DNA from: Podarcis tiliguerta
Lineage: Eukaryota
Assembly: GCA_965153285.1 (NCBI GenBank)
Contig: OZ229115.1
DNA length: 64,000 nt
Strand: one strand, 5' to 3'
The number at the start of each line of letters is the position of its first letter. The stretch's first letter is position 1. Shown here one piece after another: positions 45,205 to 64,000 of the stretch. The notes under the pieces are model-generated. The model made no database searches, was not told where the DNA came from, and saw only the letters and a list, made by a program, of their open reading frames with translations. The position numbers were made by a program, and so were the translations under genes.

Positions 45205-48200
45205 GCTTATGATTTTAAATGTTTTTATTTGTAACAGTATTACATGGTGTGTTACAGAAATTAATGGAAAATTTCTAAAAATTTGTTGGTTTTTTTCTGC
45301 TGAATGCATTACACATAAAGTTAAGGGTGAAAAAAAGATGTTCAACAAATGGTTTTCCTCTGAGGTAAAGTTAAAGTAGATCTAGAAATGTACTGCAAAA
45401 AACAGTCATTTTTATCTTTCTTTTCTTTATTAAAAAAATACGTGTCGGAATGCAGAAATCAAAATGAATAAAGGTAGAAAGTAAACATCTTTGCAACGAA
45501 GGTGCCCAGTACATTATTTGATCATAGGTTTTGTCAGACAGTTGAATGACTACGATCTATCAAAATATTTTTTTAATGACATGGTTGGAATCAAGAAACT
45601 ACTGGAGACAGTACAGGATGGTGAGTGGGATTCCCTGGTTTAAAATTTAAAGTGACAAATTTAGTGCTAGTGAAGAGCAGGAAGGGGAAAGCTTGTTGAC
45701 TCCCCTGAACCTATTATGTATCTATTGAATGGTACAGTGTAGGCTCCAATATTATCTCGCTTCTAGGCTATGGCAAAAAATGAATCTTCTGATGGTGGAA
45801 CAGGGTAGCTATGGAGCCTCTTGTTTTAACCCCACCCCACCCCCCAAAAAACCCATAACCAAATGTTTACATGGAGCAAATTTCTTTGTGACTTCTGATT
45901 TTGATATCCCAACTTGATTCTCTTTTATAGCTACTGTGTAGTATTGGTTACATAAACTTTTCCCATCCTGGGAAGGTTCTTCAGAGTCGTATGGTTACAG
46001 AAATCTTCAAACTATGATGTGAATGCTTTGGTCATTAACTGAAAAGCTAATGAGACCTCAACCTACTCCAAAGTTTTATGAAGAACTGAAATGTCACCTT
46101 CTTCTAATCCAATATCCCAACACAAAAATGGTAAATAGTAGGGTTGCCCTATTTATGGAAGCAAAATTCAGTATACAAAAGTTGAACTTTTTTTAGGCAA
46201 TCATCCTCAATCTTGGGCATTTTACCAATTTCCCGTAATTCCCCCCCCCCCCATGCTATTTTCACTGGGGAATTCCAGATGCTTGGCAACCCTGTAAATA
46301 GCTTTGCTAAGGAAGAATGTAGCATTTCCTATTAAAATCAATAATTGGAAGATTATCTAATAAGAAAATGTTTTCATTCACTTGGTTGGACTGAAAATAT
46401 ACAATCCCACGCATTTTAAATCCTACTGGGAATATATTTTTTGCATCTTTTGTTTGATGTGAGTTTGCCACAGAGATCCTGACAATTAGAACAGAGAGAA
46501 GAAATGACAGGAACAGTGCATTAGATCTCACTTCTTTGATACTGAGCCTATCAACATCTAGTGTATCATTCACTCACTGGTAAAGCACACATTCAGTATA
46601 TATTTCAGAGTTACTGGCTGGAATTAGGAAATTTAGTTGCCAGCACCACCAAATCACCATCCTGTTCCGCTTTCAGCTGTGTGTGTAAAATGCTTTCATT
46701 AAACCATTCAAACATATGGAAATATACAACTCCAGGCCTACACAAATCAATGGAAAATACACAGAAACCTTGGTGTTATGATCTAAAAACAAAAAATCTG
46801 CATAACCCATTAAGCAATTCCTCATTTGGGTTCATTAACTTTTTTTTAGTGCTAAACCACTAAAATTCAATATATTGTGATCTGCATAGGAACTTCAGGA
46901 AAACACATTTGACCTGTATAACAATTCTCTGTAGGCCAAAAATATATAGATTCTTTATGCAAATTATGTGCTAAGGATAGGAACCAAACACTGCACTTTT
47001 CTTACATAAATGCTTAAAAAAGAGAATTTTTAAAAAGTTGTTTCTGATTTGTGTGTAAACAGTTTTGATTTTTATTTTCTAGCTATGAAATGGCTATGGA
47101 ATGTACTTTTTTCCCTTGAAAATGTACAGTATGTAGTAATATTTGTGTCATAAAAGCAAGAAAATAAATCATGTGTTACCCATCAACTTTACTAGTTGCT
47201 GACAACCTAATTGCTGCTGGGAAATGCACTTTATTATAAGCTTGTGGGGGGAAAAAACCATACGAGATGCAAGAGCCACAGACTGGGGGTTTCCACACTT
47301 CCAAAGTACTGCCATTTGCTACCTTCTCTACAGTGTCATGGCATTATTAAAAGAATTCTCATAACATTTTATATTTACAAAAAAAACCTGGCAAATTTCA
47401 TTCAAACTCCTTAAAGCCATTTCCCCTTAAACATTTAAAGAGTTTTATGGTAAGTTTTTTTTTCCTTTTTAATTTCAAGTTATAAAATAAAAATCCCATT
47501 TGAATTTTTCTGATGTACAAAAAGTGATAAAGATGAACAATTTGATCACAGAATCAGTTTCAAAATTCATGCCATCTTCATCTTGGTTAATAAAGTCCAT
47601 CCCAATCAAATCCAGAAAGCATACTGGAAGTATTTGGCAAACAATTTTTTTCTCTCTCTCTCTCTTCAAAAATGGCACACAGAGAAGAAAAACACTTGTC
47701 TGCATAGCATTACAGCAGCAAGATATCAAAGAAATAAAAAATATTCCTTTACTGGTCTTTGTTTTAAGAGTCCCCTAGGAAATAACACTGTTAAGTCTTT
47801 TTCTTCTTCTTTTTCTTCATCAAAATATTTGATGTCCTTTTCTACCCACAGCAGAAGTATTCAAAACAAAAAAAGCAGCATTTCATCTCTTTGATGTACT
47901 GTAATTTCAAAAGGTCCATTTGGCAAACGTTTCCCAATCAAGATGGATAATCAGCAAAATGGCAATCCATGGTTTCAAGTTAAGGATAATTTTCACAGGA
48001 GGCGTTTTGCTGCTAGAGTCTGTCACCTGTCTGTAAGAAAAGGGTATAGAATGGAACACTCAAATACTTTGTCCCCTACCTTCAAATATGCCATTATGGA
48101 GTAGTATTGGGTGGCAGCGGCGGGGAATACAGCCAGATCAGTCTAATATGGTGATAAAAAAGTCACCATATCATCAAAATGTGCAGCCACAGAGCTCAAT

Positions 48201-48630
48201 GGCTGTAGAATTCATGATTTTTTTCCTGCATTTTTTATATTATTAAATGATTAGCTGTCCTTTAACAGATTTGAACTGATTACTTCCATAATGTGGTGCA
48301 CTGGAAATGGCAAAAAAGTGACAAGGCGTGGTGGGAAATGCTGGATAGTTGAAACTTGACGAAAGGTTTTGTTGGATATCAGGACTGTGGAACAAAACAA
48401 AAGTGTCATGTTCTGCCATAGAGAGTTGCCACTGGTTGCCAAAACATTTTGCTTGTTGAATTGATGCAGTGAGGTGATTATCCTTTATTAGATGAGATCA
48501 ACTGCAAGAAAATGTGGGAGCCAAAGGCCTGTCAAGGCTGTAGTTTTCTGTTTGAGTCTTGAAGCACCACAAGCGTGGGTCAACGCTATTTCTTAGGTCT
48601 GTTGATCTGGGCATAGAGAGGCTCTCTTTC
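45205..48630 (-). other. DAB1: DAB1 terminal exon (3' UTR; first 45 nt potentially coding)
   Basis: Acceptor tttctttctattgttcccag|GAAAGAGAGCCTCTCTATGCCCAGATCAACAGACCTAAGAAATAG resembles, from memory, the sequence following the stop exon in mammalian DAB1 mRNA. AU-rich, no recognisable TEs. The 3' boundary is approximate. Confidence 0.8.
45224..45229 (-). terminator. Probable DAB1 distal polyadenylation signal
   Basis: AATAAA on the minus strand followed by U-rich sequence, ending a ~3.4-kb AU-rich tract with no recognisable TEs. Confidence 0.6.
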
Positions 48631-51629
48631 CTGGGAACAATAGAAAGAAATGTGAATAGAGACAGTTCTAGTCATTTGTATCTAAGCAGCAGATTTCAGG
48701 AAAGTAGGTGAGCAGAATAAAAATGCTAAAGAAATAGCATTTTTATTCTTTTGAATTATGATGGTGTTTGAAAAGGCAGTAATAATATAAAAGGATTCAG
48801 CAATTTCGCATTGTTTATTAAGAACCCAATTCATTGTTTAAGTTGAAATAATTATAATGAAATAGAATTCATGTACATCTCACAGTACAGTTGAGACCAG
48901 AAGAGGCTAAGTTTGCAATTATTGTTTTTAAACACACAGAGCAAATCGGCCCATTGCCCCCACACCCTGAAAGACAATTCAAGACAGATGACTAAATGGT
49001 AAAAATATTATATTTCTTAAAATGTAGAAAAATTAGAGGGTCTGCCAGTTAAGCAAATAATTAAGTGTAGGCAGGTGGAATCGATGAATGCATATGAGAG
49101 AAGCAGCCCTCTATCTCATGGGAATGTAAGTCATTGCACTGTGAGTTCCCCAGCCAAGGACTGGGAGAAATATCTCCCTTTTTACTGAGCAAGCCTTGAG
49201 TATCTGAAACCCAACCTGCACACCCGACTCTTCCTGCGGGGCATTCATCATGATGTGTAAACCATATCCTTAGCATTCTATGGATGATGACTCACGAGTG
49301 CCTATTAGCACAGGGTGGCAGTGACATCTTATCTCTTCTTACCTACCAGCACTGAATACCAAACAGCCAAGTTAACCAAATCACCACAAGATACCCTACA
49401 GTGCGAAGTAGATAAAAACAGGGAGTCCTAGGTCCCAACCAGGGGCTCCCTCTTAACTCCTTCCCCCCCCCCAAAAAAAGTGCTAGGCAAAGCCCACTAT
49501 AGAGGGGCAAGACGGGGGCAGCAGTGTAGCTTTAAATACTGGACTGGACTGTCCCCTCCCATTACACACTCCTGCTCATATTCTCCCCCTGGGAGAAACC
49601 AGCTTGAGTCTTTATCAAGTCCAAGAAGGTGGATGAGGCAAATTCAATCCTGCTGAGAGCAAGGACATCATTCAGCTTATAAACATGCAGTTTTAGTTCA
49701 GAGAAATAATGACAAATTGTTTTCCTGTACTCCAGTTAAATATTGCACATCTACTACTATGAACTTTTCTGTTGGCGCATTGTAGCAATTAGATGCAGGA
49801 AGGCTTCACTCCAAAGCCAGTGTAGGCTTGAATAAAATAATAATGGCTAAAATAGCAAAACAATGGATGGTGGTGAGCTAACAAGAAGCCCAATGTGTCA
49901 TATGTCACCTTAGCATTCCATGATATTATACAAATTCAAAATCCAAATAAATGTTAAGTCAGCGATACCAGATATATCAGTAGAACTACCATGTAATAAA
50001 CACATGGCAAGTTTGGCTATAGAGCTTCCTAAAGGATCTAAACCTTTCTATAAAGTGCCCTAGTAAATTGACATCAGGATCTTGCCCCGCTATGAAATCC
50101 TGGTGTGCAGCAGTGCTGTATGACCTATGCTCCCTCCTTGTCGAGTCCAGCAATGGGCACATGCAAGTGATAAAAATTCTGGAGAACTTGAAAGCTTGCT
50201 CACAACTTTGTGACATTTGGGTTGGTCTTGACAAAAGTATACTGTGCGGGTTATTTCCAAATGGAGTGGTGGTGTTGGTGGTGGTCTAAAAAAAAATGCA
50301 GGTTATTTTTCTTTGTAAATGACTAATTTAAAATTCTGAATTATATTATGGAACTCTGTTTGCAGGGCTTGTAAGTAAAAAATGAATGAGTTGGAGCATG
50401 TAACAGCGGCATATTTTGCATTCCAATCCACAAAGTATTCACTTCTCCAGAAGAAGGGTAAAGGTAAGCATACCATATCTTGTATTTATGGGTGATATAC
50501 AACAAGGTCAGTCCACTTGGGCAATGGATTTTTACTCAGGCAAATGGGATTTCTACTTCCTCTCCCCCCTCCCCCAAGCTCCCACCACCCCTAAATAATC
50601 TGCTGTGGAGGCTAGGGGACCCTCAACAGGGCACAAAGTTGGGGGTGGAGGGGGCTACAGAAGAGAGTAAAGGGAAGTCCCATCACATCTACTATTGTGA
50701 TGTTGGATCTTGCCCCATGAATCTGTAACACCTATGCAGAGAATCTCAGCATTTCAAATCAGGTCTTATTGCACAGATAATGAACATTATATCCATCTTC
50801 ATATTTACCCCAGTATGCAAGAAAGAATAACAATTCTATTCCAAGTTTGGGGACACTTCAAAGATTATGCTTACATAGATTGCTGCTGCATAGACCGCAG
50901 ACACTCACAATTCTGGCTAGTTTACAATACAATAGTACTTGAAAGAAAGACGATTTGGCCTCTAGGCTTCATAAATTTTGATGGGACCTTTCACTCTGCT
51001 CTGGTGTAATCCTCACTTTATCCTTAGAATAATAGCCTTGAAGTTTCAGAAAGGATCCCGCTATCTGTTGTCAGTGCACTTTGGGTCATATCTTTAGCAG
51101 TGAATAGCAAATGCACATGGTTGAACAAAGTAAATTAAAAAGCCATTTATCACCTTATAGTACCAGAGGTGCATGAGAAGTAAATTAGAAAGGACAGGAA
51201 AGAATATGTAAATAATAAATAATGCCACGATAATAGAGGGCCCTTTCTTGGGTCAATTGTCATGAACTGGACACTGAAAAGCAGTACCGGGATAGCCAGA
51301 AAATTATACTACAAAGGTAAATAAATAAATCTCCCCCCCCCCCCACAAAATGACACTTAATATTAAATCTCTAAGACCCTTTAATGTTAACCAACTCAAT
51401 GTAGCTTTGTTCTACAGACACTAGTTAACAGGGTATAGATACATTTTTTTAAATGACCCTCAAAAATTATTCCATAGAACTGGCTTTTTTATCTTCTTTA
51501 TAGCCTTTGCTAAAAACACATTTTTAACAAGATTGTTGCACCTCAATTCCCATTTCTTAGCTATCAAAATTATCCTCTACTTCAGAAAGTCATTGCTAAG
51601 GCTTCAGCTTAAAAATGATCACAAATAGC

Positions 51630-58640: not shown

Positions 58641-60393
58641 TGAAGATATTGGGCCTTGTCATAGTTTTAACTATTGATCATACAGAACAAACTTGGACTA
58701 TTCGCCCTCTAAATATTGTGGTAGCTTCAAGGGAAAAGAACAGGTCCATTCAATTCCTTAATGTAGCAGTAGCCAACATGGAGCCCTCTAGATAATTTAG
58801 GCCTCCAAGTTCCATTGGCCTAATGGTAGGGGGCCATTGGAGTTGTAGTCTAAATCATTTGGAGGGCACCATTTTGGCCATCCCTGTCTCAATGCTTTTT
58901 CAGATAGTCTATTATTTAACTGTAGATTTCCCCTACCTGATGAAAGTGCGGGAGAGCCAAAACGGAACACCTGCTCATCCCTCCCTTTAAACTGTCACAA
59001 TGCTGATATGGAGCCATACAATGTGCAAACATTAAAAAGCAAAGCACAATAGTATAGTTCAAACTGATGGGGAAAGTGGGATAAAGGAACATTTTTAAAG
59101 AGACAAAGTAGTTATTGAAGAGTCTGACACCCCCTTAGTTGTATACTGCTTAGAAATCTAAAGCCACAAATGACAAAGAAAACATTTCAAATTTTACCTC
59201 TTCTTTAAAAAAAAAAAAGTAACTGAGGAAGTGAGACTGCACAGACTTCAGGGATGACAGAGGTTTCAGGTGAGGGCAGAAATGGTTTTAGGGTCATGGG
59301 AAAGGGACTATTGGGTAGCAGCTAGTACATTCAGATATCTGTGGTTGGAAGCACATTCTTAAAAGCCTGGAAACCGATGCACATTATGCACTAAAAATAA
59401 ATCCACCATTTCCATTAATTTGTTTCATATGCTCCATACACAGAAAGATGAGCAATAAATCACATAGTGCTTGAACTGTTTCAAATCACAGCGCAGTGTA
59501 ATAAAAGAAACATTTTTCATATGGCAGCATTGGAATACATTGAGATGAGATGGGGATGTTCAACACTCACAGGCACTGTAGCATCACAATCTTTCTGACA
59601 AAACACAGATGCCAGAATAAAAATAGCCACGGTCACCCTCATAAAACATCTATCAACACCCACAACATGCAGCGTGCAGTTAACGATTAAAGCAATTGTG
59701 TTGCCTTAGCATTTTGTCATGGAAAATATATATTTAAAATGATAGGGTTATATGTTCTCTGTATCAATGGGTTGTTAACCCATAGACATCAGCATTGTAA
59801 TTTAATATTTTCATTAGACCCTTTAACTAATAGGCTTTCCAATTGACCATTATTGTGGCCACAGAGTGGGAAGGCACATCTTAATTTATTGATGGTGCTT
59901 AATTCATTCTCTTAAAAAATATGTTGCACTGCTGATGTCAGTTCAGTCCTGGATGAACATTGCCTGCCACTTTGCAATTTCTATCAGAAAAAGATAAAAT
60001 GCACAATATACAAATATCTTAAATGGTAATCATGAATACCAGAAACTGCAGAGCGTTGATATTCTGTAAGAAAAACAATAACTATGAACCTGTTGTTGAT
60101 AATCTCTCATTTCACAGTTGCTGTAATATATATTTTCCCTAGGGTTGTATTTTTTTATTATTATTATTCTGACAACACAAAAGTGCACCACCTAGAAATG
60201 GAATTATCAACCAGTGATGCATCAATGGTGTGAGAAGTAGTGAAATGAAGGTATGAAATATTCCATATTGTATATGTGGAATATATTATGTTTGTGGCTA
60301 GCATCAATGTAAATGAAGGCAGGCAATGGTGAATATGAATAGCTCAAAAGTGACAGAGAGAAAAGGACAGATACCTACCCCAACCTGCGCTAT

Positions 60394-60477
60394 CTAGCTA
60401 TCGCCCTGTGGACTTACAGTATCACCAATGGGCTCACCAAATGGATCACTGTTGGATGAGGCCTGAGATCCATCAGG
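60394..60477 (-). CDS. DAB1: Disabled-1, stop-codon exon (exon probably extends to 60379)
   Basis: ttctag|CCT; PDGSQASSNSDPFGEPIGDTVSPQGDS* with TAG at 60394-60396, then ATAGCGCAGGTTGGG|gtaggt. Confidence 0.95.
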   Translation of the reverse strand, partial: PDGSQASSNSDPFGEPIGDTVSPQGDS

Positions 60478-63633: not shown

Positions 63634-64000
63634 GTGAGTTTGTCGATGGCGTTGTAGAAGTCACAGGAGTCAAATTTAACTGAGAGATGTCAAAGTCATC
63701 ACAATCATCTGCTTCCTGTGCCATCCCAACTTTGTTAAAGTAACTGGAGAAGGCCTCTGAGGTACAACTGAGGGAAGGCTGATCTGGTTTTCGTGATGGC
63801 ACTGGCGGAGGCTGAGCCATCTGGAAATCTTTGAACATTTCTTTTCCTGCTTGCTGCCTAGGCCTATCTGTCTGCGGACTGGATCTGGTGGAATCGCTTG
63901 TAGGTGGAACGGTAGCAATGGGAGCAACGGTACCTTGAAACATGGCTGCTTGTAAAGGCAATACAGTTTGTGTTGGCATGAAGGCAGCAGGCTGAAACTG
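63634..64000 (-). CDS. DAB1: Disabled-1, large C-terminal-region exon (5' part outside window)
   Basis: [81 protein letters not shown]; donor TCA C|gtgagt. Confidence 0.98.

Follow-up and report, generated by a model that had tools for sequence, protein, structure and literature searches.

A Probable Alternative C-Terminal Coding Segment with an EPLYA Motif Opening the Last DAB1 Exon of the Lizard Podarcis tiliguerta

Introduction

Does the nominally non-coding last exon of DAB1 carry protein-coding information? DAB1 signaling is usually told through five tyrosines, Y185-Y232, and the last exon of this gene in Podarcis tiliguerta opens, from its first base, with a short frame that reads a further tyrosine in the sequence EPLYA. 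The locus was studied in a stretch of genomic DNA of 64,000 nucleotides (contig OZ229115.1), referred to here as the window. The first-pass annotation of the window described a "hidden" peptide and proposed three ways of reaching it, including (i) skipping of the stop-containing penultimate exon, (ii) an internal donor within that exon, and (iii) readthrough of the canonical TAG. Its coordinates for the tail and the exons are exact to the base, and the exon phases place all three routes in frame with the tail, as it had stated. The questions addressed below are whether the peptide is a genuine coding segment, which of the routes would produce it, and what its tyrosine might do.

Gene Identity and Exon Architecture

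On sequence grounds the gene at this locus is DAB1, as judged from its match to pig, its matches in other vertebrates, and its agreement with the pig exon borders. The 3′ part of the large exon displays 85% identity to the pig isoform sDab1-Li over 115 residues (E = 2e-52); no Pfam domain was matched in this exon, as expected for a disordered region. The 128-nt exon is 90-100% identical to database DAB1 and, used as a 42-residue query in protein searches, retrieves DAB1 from many vertebrates, and a DAB1 model from Podarcis lilfordi is 100% identical to the window over 73 residues. In addition, the published pig exon table matches the window in the border ACTCAC/gt, the 128-nt length, and the border agCCTGAT (Table 1).

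Table 1. Features of the DAB1 3′ end in the window, with the pig counterparts (PMC3044655); a slash marks an exon border
Feature	Positions	Strand	Sequence and remarks	Pig counterpart
Large DAB1 exon, 3′ part	63634..64000	(-)	ends ACTCAC/GTGAGT; continues beyond the window	exon 14, 549 nt, ends ACTCAC/gt, following intron 4,646 nt
128-nt exon	62512-62385	(-)	ends ..SKSEEQEA, GAA GCG/GTAAGT, phase 0	exon 15, 128 nt, ends GAAGCC/gt, following intron 347 nt
Penultimate 99-nt exon	60379..60477	(-)	PDGSQASSNSDPFGEPIGDTVSPQGDS*, TAG, 15 nt more; cassette skipped in the alternative isoform	exon 16, 111 nt, begins agCCTGAT, following intron 13,941 nt
Internal GTAAGT in the stop exon	60412..60417	(-)	phase 0, after codon ACT; lineage-specific, putative donor	
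Acceptor of the last DAB1 exon	48631..48655	(-)	polypyrimidine tract + AG, TCACATTTCTTTCTATTGTTCCCAG	
Candidate alternative C-terminal coding segment	48586..48630	(-)	14 codons EREPLYAQINRPKK + TAG, from the first base of the last exon	exon 17, 45 nt to the stop, begins agGAGCTG

The 99-nt exon reads PDGSQASSNSDPFGEPIGDTVSPQGDS*IAQVG up to its donor GTAGGT, with the canonical TAG at 60396-60394. In the canonical mRNA this exon encodes the final 27 residues together with the stop codon, and the last exon stays untranslated, including the 45 nt at its 5′ end. Those 45 nt run GAA AGA GAG CCT CTC TAT GCC CAG ATC AAC AGA CCT AAG AAA TAG, that is, EREPLYAQINRPKK*. Both the canonical and the skipping splice use the donor of the 128-nt exon; ending in phase 0, this exon would be spliced straight to the last exon when the 99-nt exon is skipped, and the resulting mRNA would encode 14 more residues, EREPLYAQINRPKK, before the stop. 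An acidic 27-residue end containing DPF would thereby be swapped for a short basic tail. Directly before the 14-codon frame lies the last-exon acceptor, TTTCTTTCTATTGTTCCCAG, which comprises 81% pyrimidines at positions -23 to -3, whereas the acceptor tract of the 99-nt stop exon is weaker, with 67% pyrimidines.

By itself, the open frame of the tail is no more than chance would provide, since 46% of the 14-codon windows in the UTR-like DNA downstream of the tail are free of stops. The pattern E[PG][ILV]YA has one match in the six frames of the 64-kb window, located at the tail site, a count to be read with the five-residue EPLYA motif having been chosen post hoc. The tail frame exceeds chance by virtue of the conservation of the peptide across species.

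Conservation of the Tail in Mammalian DAB1 Proteins

Among 254 long DAB1 proteins fetched, the canonical C-terminus is present in 218, and in 24, all of them mammalian, ...SKSEEQEA is followed directly by a 14-residue tail. The tail-bearing entries surfaced only when ten large clusters of mammalian DAB1 were listed in full membership; the exons were searched singly, and the tails were compared on database proteins and not on a joined spliced model. The tails comprise (i) ELEPLYAQINRPKK in horse, elephant seal, fox, and sea lion; (ii) EPEPLYAQINRPKK in spiny mouse, Mastomys, mole-rat, mouse lemur, and macaque (Macaca fascicularis, isoform X17); (iii) EPEPLYAKINRPKK in mouse (isoform X8, XP_017175439.1) and naked mole-rat; (iv) ELEPLYAQIHRPKK in pig and Myotis; (v) EREPLYAQIHRPKE in alpaca; (vi) tails ending ..INKSKK or ..IDKSKK in whales and a dolphin; (vii) ESEPLYAQISRSRT in tenrec; and (viii) DYESLYAQINRPKK in the marsupial Antechinus (isoform X3).

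Comparison of the lizard tail with the 12 distinct mammalian tails gives 9-13 identical residues out of 14. Residues E3, L5, Y6, A7, and I9 are invariant throughout, the other positions show conservative replacements (Q/K/R, R/K, N/H/D/S), and the frame is free of shifts, with the stop after residue 14 in every case. The C-terminal basic end is variable (RPKK, KSKK, RSRT, RPKE), and the marsupial displays ESLYA in place of EPLYA; the core E-P-L-Y-A-x-I is the same in the lizard and in placental mammals. The mammalian conservation put forward in the first-pass annotation is borne out at the protein level, across 12 distinct tails with an invariant tyrosine. At the nucleotide level, the sole codon pair available is the first tail codon, GAG in pig and GAA in the lizard, a synonymous difference.

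The lengths of the tail isoforms equal those of the canonical forms minus 17 (588 to 571, 555 to 538, 553 to 536, 520 to 503, and 469 to 452), owing to the replacement of 31 residues by 14 in the mammalian proteins. The tail is modeled on forms of two kinds, those of 571 and 538 residues containing the Y198/Y220 exons and those of 536, 503, and 452 residues lacking them, many of these RefSeq isoforms being predictions in which the exon combinations may be inferred. The RefSeq predicted isoforms mouse X8, horse X2, macaque X17, and Antechinus X3 resemble the lizard arrangement in that ...SKSEEQEA is followed by 14 residues containing L-Y-A-x-I and by the same stop; they differ in being mammalian, mostly computational, and placed on several upstream exon combinations.

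Beyond mammals, the tail was absent from the non-mammalian proteins among 340 fetched, a set collected via the upstream exons rather than via the tail, and the bird, coelacanth, frog, and fish DAB1 entries show canonical or other ends. The 42-residue exon gave 13 matches against protein representatives, none with the tail, and retrieved a single genomic ORF fragment in a homologous-protein search. A bat DAB1 C-terminal query returned canonical tails throughout the best 120 of 1110 matches, with a scoring that favoured the canonical end. Residues 1-73 of the Podarcis lilfordi fragment P0004 retrieved 65 fragments, mostly intron read-through, with the tail in none, and further cluster members from coelacanth, frog, fish, and squamates (the last as fragments) added no tail.

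Conservation of this kind could in principle act on the RNA: the segment would serve as a splicing enhancer or a 3′-UTR element, and the skipped mRNA would be a minor by-product encoding a peptide without selected function. The segment adjoins the acceptor, a typical place of exonic enhancers, and its open frame is not unusual given the proportion of stop-free windows stated above. However, neither the length nor the stop position differs between the lizard tail and the 12 distinct tails of mammals, the changes at the protein level are conservative, the one codon pair compared is synonymous, a full coding cDNA with the tail has been cloned from pig liver, and transcripts with exons 10-11 of that pig isoform are relatively high in testis and liver (an assay of those exons and not of the skip). 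Taken with this evidence, conservation at the RNA level alone appears quite improbable.

Exon Skipping and the Pig Isoform sDab1-Li

The pig isoform sDab1-Li was cloned as a liver cDNA by Long et al. in 2011 (BMC Neurosci 12:17; PMC3044655) and is recorded as GenBank EF444935, with the 536-residue protein ABR15760.1 / B3F0T4_PIG. In this isoform exon 16 is left out and translation ends in exon 17, 45 nt in (PMC3044655). The likeness to lizard DAB1 is close: the exon layout is the same, the stop-containing penultimate exon is the one skipped, and the stop lies 45 nt into the last exon. Compared to the lizard tail EREPLYAQINRPKK, the pig tail ELEPLYAQIHRPKK is identical at 12 of 14 residues, and the stop exon measures 111 nt in pig vs 99 nt in the lizard. 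Exons 7-8 are additionally missing from the pig cDNA, which contains exons 10-11, whereas the lizard isoform is predicted from genomic DNA; in this one cloned cDNA, the tail accompanies loss of the Y198/Y220 exons. By qPCR directed at exons 10-11, and not at the exon-16 skip, sDab1-Li is relatively high in testis and liver, and neither the new tail nor its tyrosine is discussed in the report of its cloning (PMC3044655).

The skipping route therefore matches both the RefSeq models and the pig liver cDNA. By the same token "hidden" does not describe the peptide: the skip isoform is already annotated in RefSeq and was published in 2011, which settles the question, raised in the first-pass annotation, of whether such an isoform had been annotated. 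The motif-bearing, in-frame start of the "non-coding" last exon is, in other words, a true coding signal that annotation has already captured. The basis in hand comprises the reading frame with its splice signals, conservation at the protein level, the pig cDNA, and gene models from over 20 mammals. From the compared sequences, we consider the 45 bases at the start of the last exon to be the squamate orthologue of an alternative DAB1 C-terminal coding segment, with a probability of about 0.8, and the tail isoform is presumably made in this lizard species.

It is highly improbable that the lizard tail is reached mainly through a donor at 60417 (...GEPIGDT/EREPLYAQ...) or by readthrough of the TAG. 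Both events would be in frame, and the internal GTAAGT, flawless in itself, scores 6 of 9 positions against the U1-complementary consensus, no fewer than the annotated donor GGG/GTAGGT, and may see some use in lizards. However, the internal GTAAGT corresponds to Val-Ser codons that are missing in birds and mammals, which read GDTISPQ and GDNISPQ there; the Thr-Ile-Ser of birds and the Asn-Ile-Ser of mammals allow no GT, so that the donor is neither ancient nor conserved. Among the 24 database tails, none follows a partial stop exon. The internal-donor route is thus left with a lineage-specific GTAAGT and no database tail after a truncated stop exon. Regarding readthrough, the context of the canonical stop is AGC TAG ATA, i.e., UAG-A, and not a leaky one such as UGA-CUAG. 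To our knowledge, UAG followed by A is no known leaky context, and nothing was found in support of this third route.

The Tyrosine Motif and Its Precedents

Tail residues 3-7, EPLYA, conform to the EPIYA-type motif E-P-[I/L]-Y-A. When phosphorylated, this motif becomes a docking site for SH2 proteins, among them Csk, SHP2, and Crk (PMC3593179). The neuronal and epithelial adaptor p140Cap/SRCIN1 contains an EPLYA identical to that of the lizard DAB1 tail, and phosphorylation of that protein falls mainly on the EPLYA/EGLYA tyrosines, which are substrates chiefly of Abl and are bound by the SH2 domain of Csk (PMC3561454). On the other hand, p140Cap is unrelated to DAB1, and its motif is internal, whereas that of DAB1 is located eight residues from the C-terminus; tyrosine phosphorylation and Csk binding have been shown for p140Cap, the DAB1 tail being compared by sequence. 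The E-P-[I/L]-Y-A core of the DAB1 tail is also common to Pragmin, CagA from H. pylori, and the Bep proteins from Bartonella, with the EPIYA of Pragmin and CagA both binding Csk (PMC3593179). The DAB1 motif occurs as a single copy and is not repeated, and its likeness to the EPIYA effectors lies in sequence only. What the first-pass annotation said of p140Cap EPLYA, Pragmin, CagA, and Csk agrees with these sources (PMC3561454, PMC3593179). According to a review, EPxYAxV is under-represented in mammalian proteomes (PMC3593179), which makes a conserved EPLYAQI notable, though it is no proof of function. With its alternative tail, DAB1 would gain a tyrosine set in a sequence that Csk recognizes in p140Cap and Pragmin. 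A literature search found no paper connecting DAB1 with EPIYA or EPLYA, and a search for the tail peptide string gave no match; no comment on the tail was found in the literature searched.

By analogy with these proteins, the conserved core may be a short linear motif, in the first place an Abl/Src-family phosphotyrosine site docking an SH2 protein, a tentative reading to which we assign somewhat less than even odds. The Csk SH2 domain prefers pY-[T/A/S]-[K/R/Q/N]-[M/I/V/R], which pY-A-Q-I fits; the hydrophobic +3 residue of pY-A-Q-I would also suit Src-family SH2 domains, so that the sign of any feedback on Reelin-Src signaling could go either way. That the partner would be Csk in particular is doubtful, the proposal resting on the precedents above.

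A different account accepts that the tail is translated and places its effect mainly in the lost end or in the change of charge, and not in phosphotyrosine docking. The canonical end contains DPF, which in Dab2 serves as an endocytic-adaptor contact and which could be a contact of this kind removed by the skip, and the added basic RPKK end could change localization, stability, or partner binding. The exchange of one tail for the other is, moreover, what the sequence displays. Experiments on the pig proteins point in the same direction: both isoforms are reported as nucleocytoplasmic shuttling proteins, and co-expression of sDab1-Li with Fyn, using GFP-tagged constructs, yields a total (4G10) phosphotyrosine signal much weaker than that of full-length Dab1 (PMC3044655). 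With GFP-tagged constructs, this weak phosphotyrosine signal, the one related experimental result found, does not favour a strong Fyn site in the tail. The ESLYA of the marsupial tail likewise speaks against a phosphotyrosine site. Nevertheless, L-Y-A-x-I is invariant and the basic end varies, a pattern suggesting that selection has acted on the tyrosine core of the tail. We regard an effect through loss or charge as a serious possibility, if a rather unlikely one.

In its most extended form, phosphotyrosine docking by the tail would make E-P-L-Y-A-x-I a sixth regulatory tyrosine of DAB1, in place since the squamate-mammal split. It would be phosphorylated by Abl or Src-family kinases, dock an SH2 protein such as Csk, and set the gain of Src/Abl signaling through DAB1, chiefly where the Y198/Y220 exons are missing, be it in isoforms or in tissues (liver, testis, early progenitors). 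As a whole this proposal is unlikely. If the tyrosine is used, the tail would provide a splice-controlled link of DAB1 to the kinases that act on it, with relevance to non-neuronal DAB1 in liver, testis, and tumours with a DAB1-ABL link.

Other Features of the DAB1 3′ End

Several additional C-terminal ends were recorded in the database proteins. Following ..EEQEA, other mammalian ends include VVQLSLLYHPFPLMGNQSQLENQGQTWVSSYS (two entries), VHRMELIS (two entries), and a few single cases, so that the exon encoding EPLYA is not the sole alternative last exon of DAB1. In a whale model, P0008, QINR lies within a long odd tail. The Podarcis lilfordi model P0004 displays ..EEQEA spliced to an exon that maps to 61717-61565 (-) of the window with 90% identity. 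The corresponding segment of the window shows a good acceptor, cctcctcctgccag/CTC, followed by a frame of 12 codons, LFEETEYRRSNC*, compared to 51 residues in Podarcis lilfordi; this alternative 3′ exon looks non-conserved or mis-annotated.

Downstream of the tail, an AATAAA is located at 48489-48484 (-), about 140 nt into the last exon, and more AATAAA/ATTAAA sites occur at 47473, 47235, 47076, 45577, 45431, and 45229. The spread of these sites suggests that short and long 3′-UTR forms are possible.
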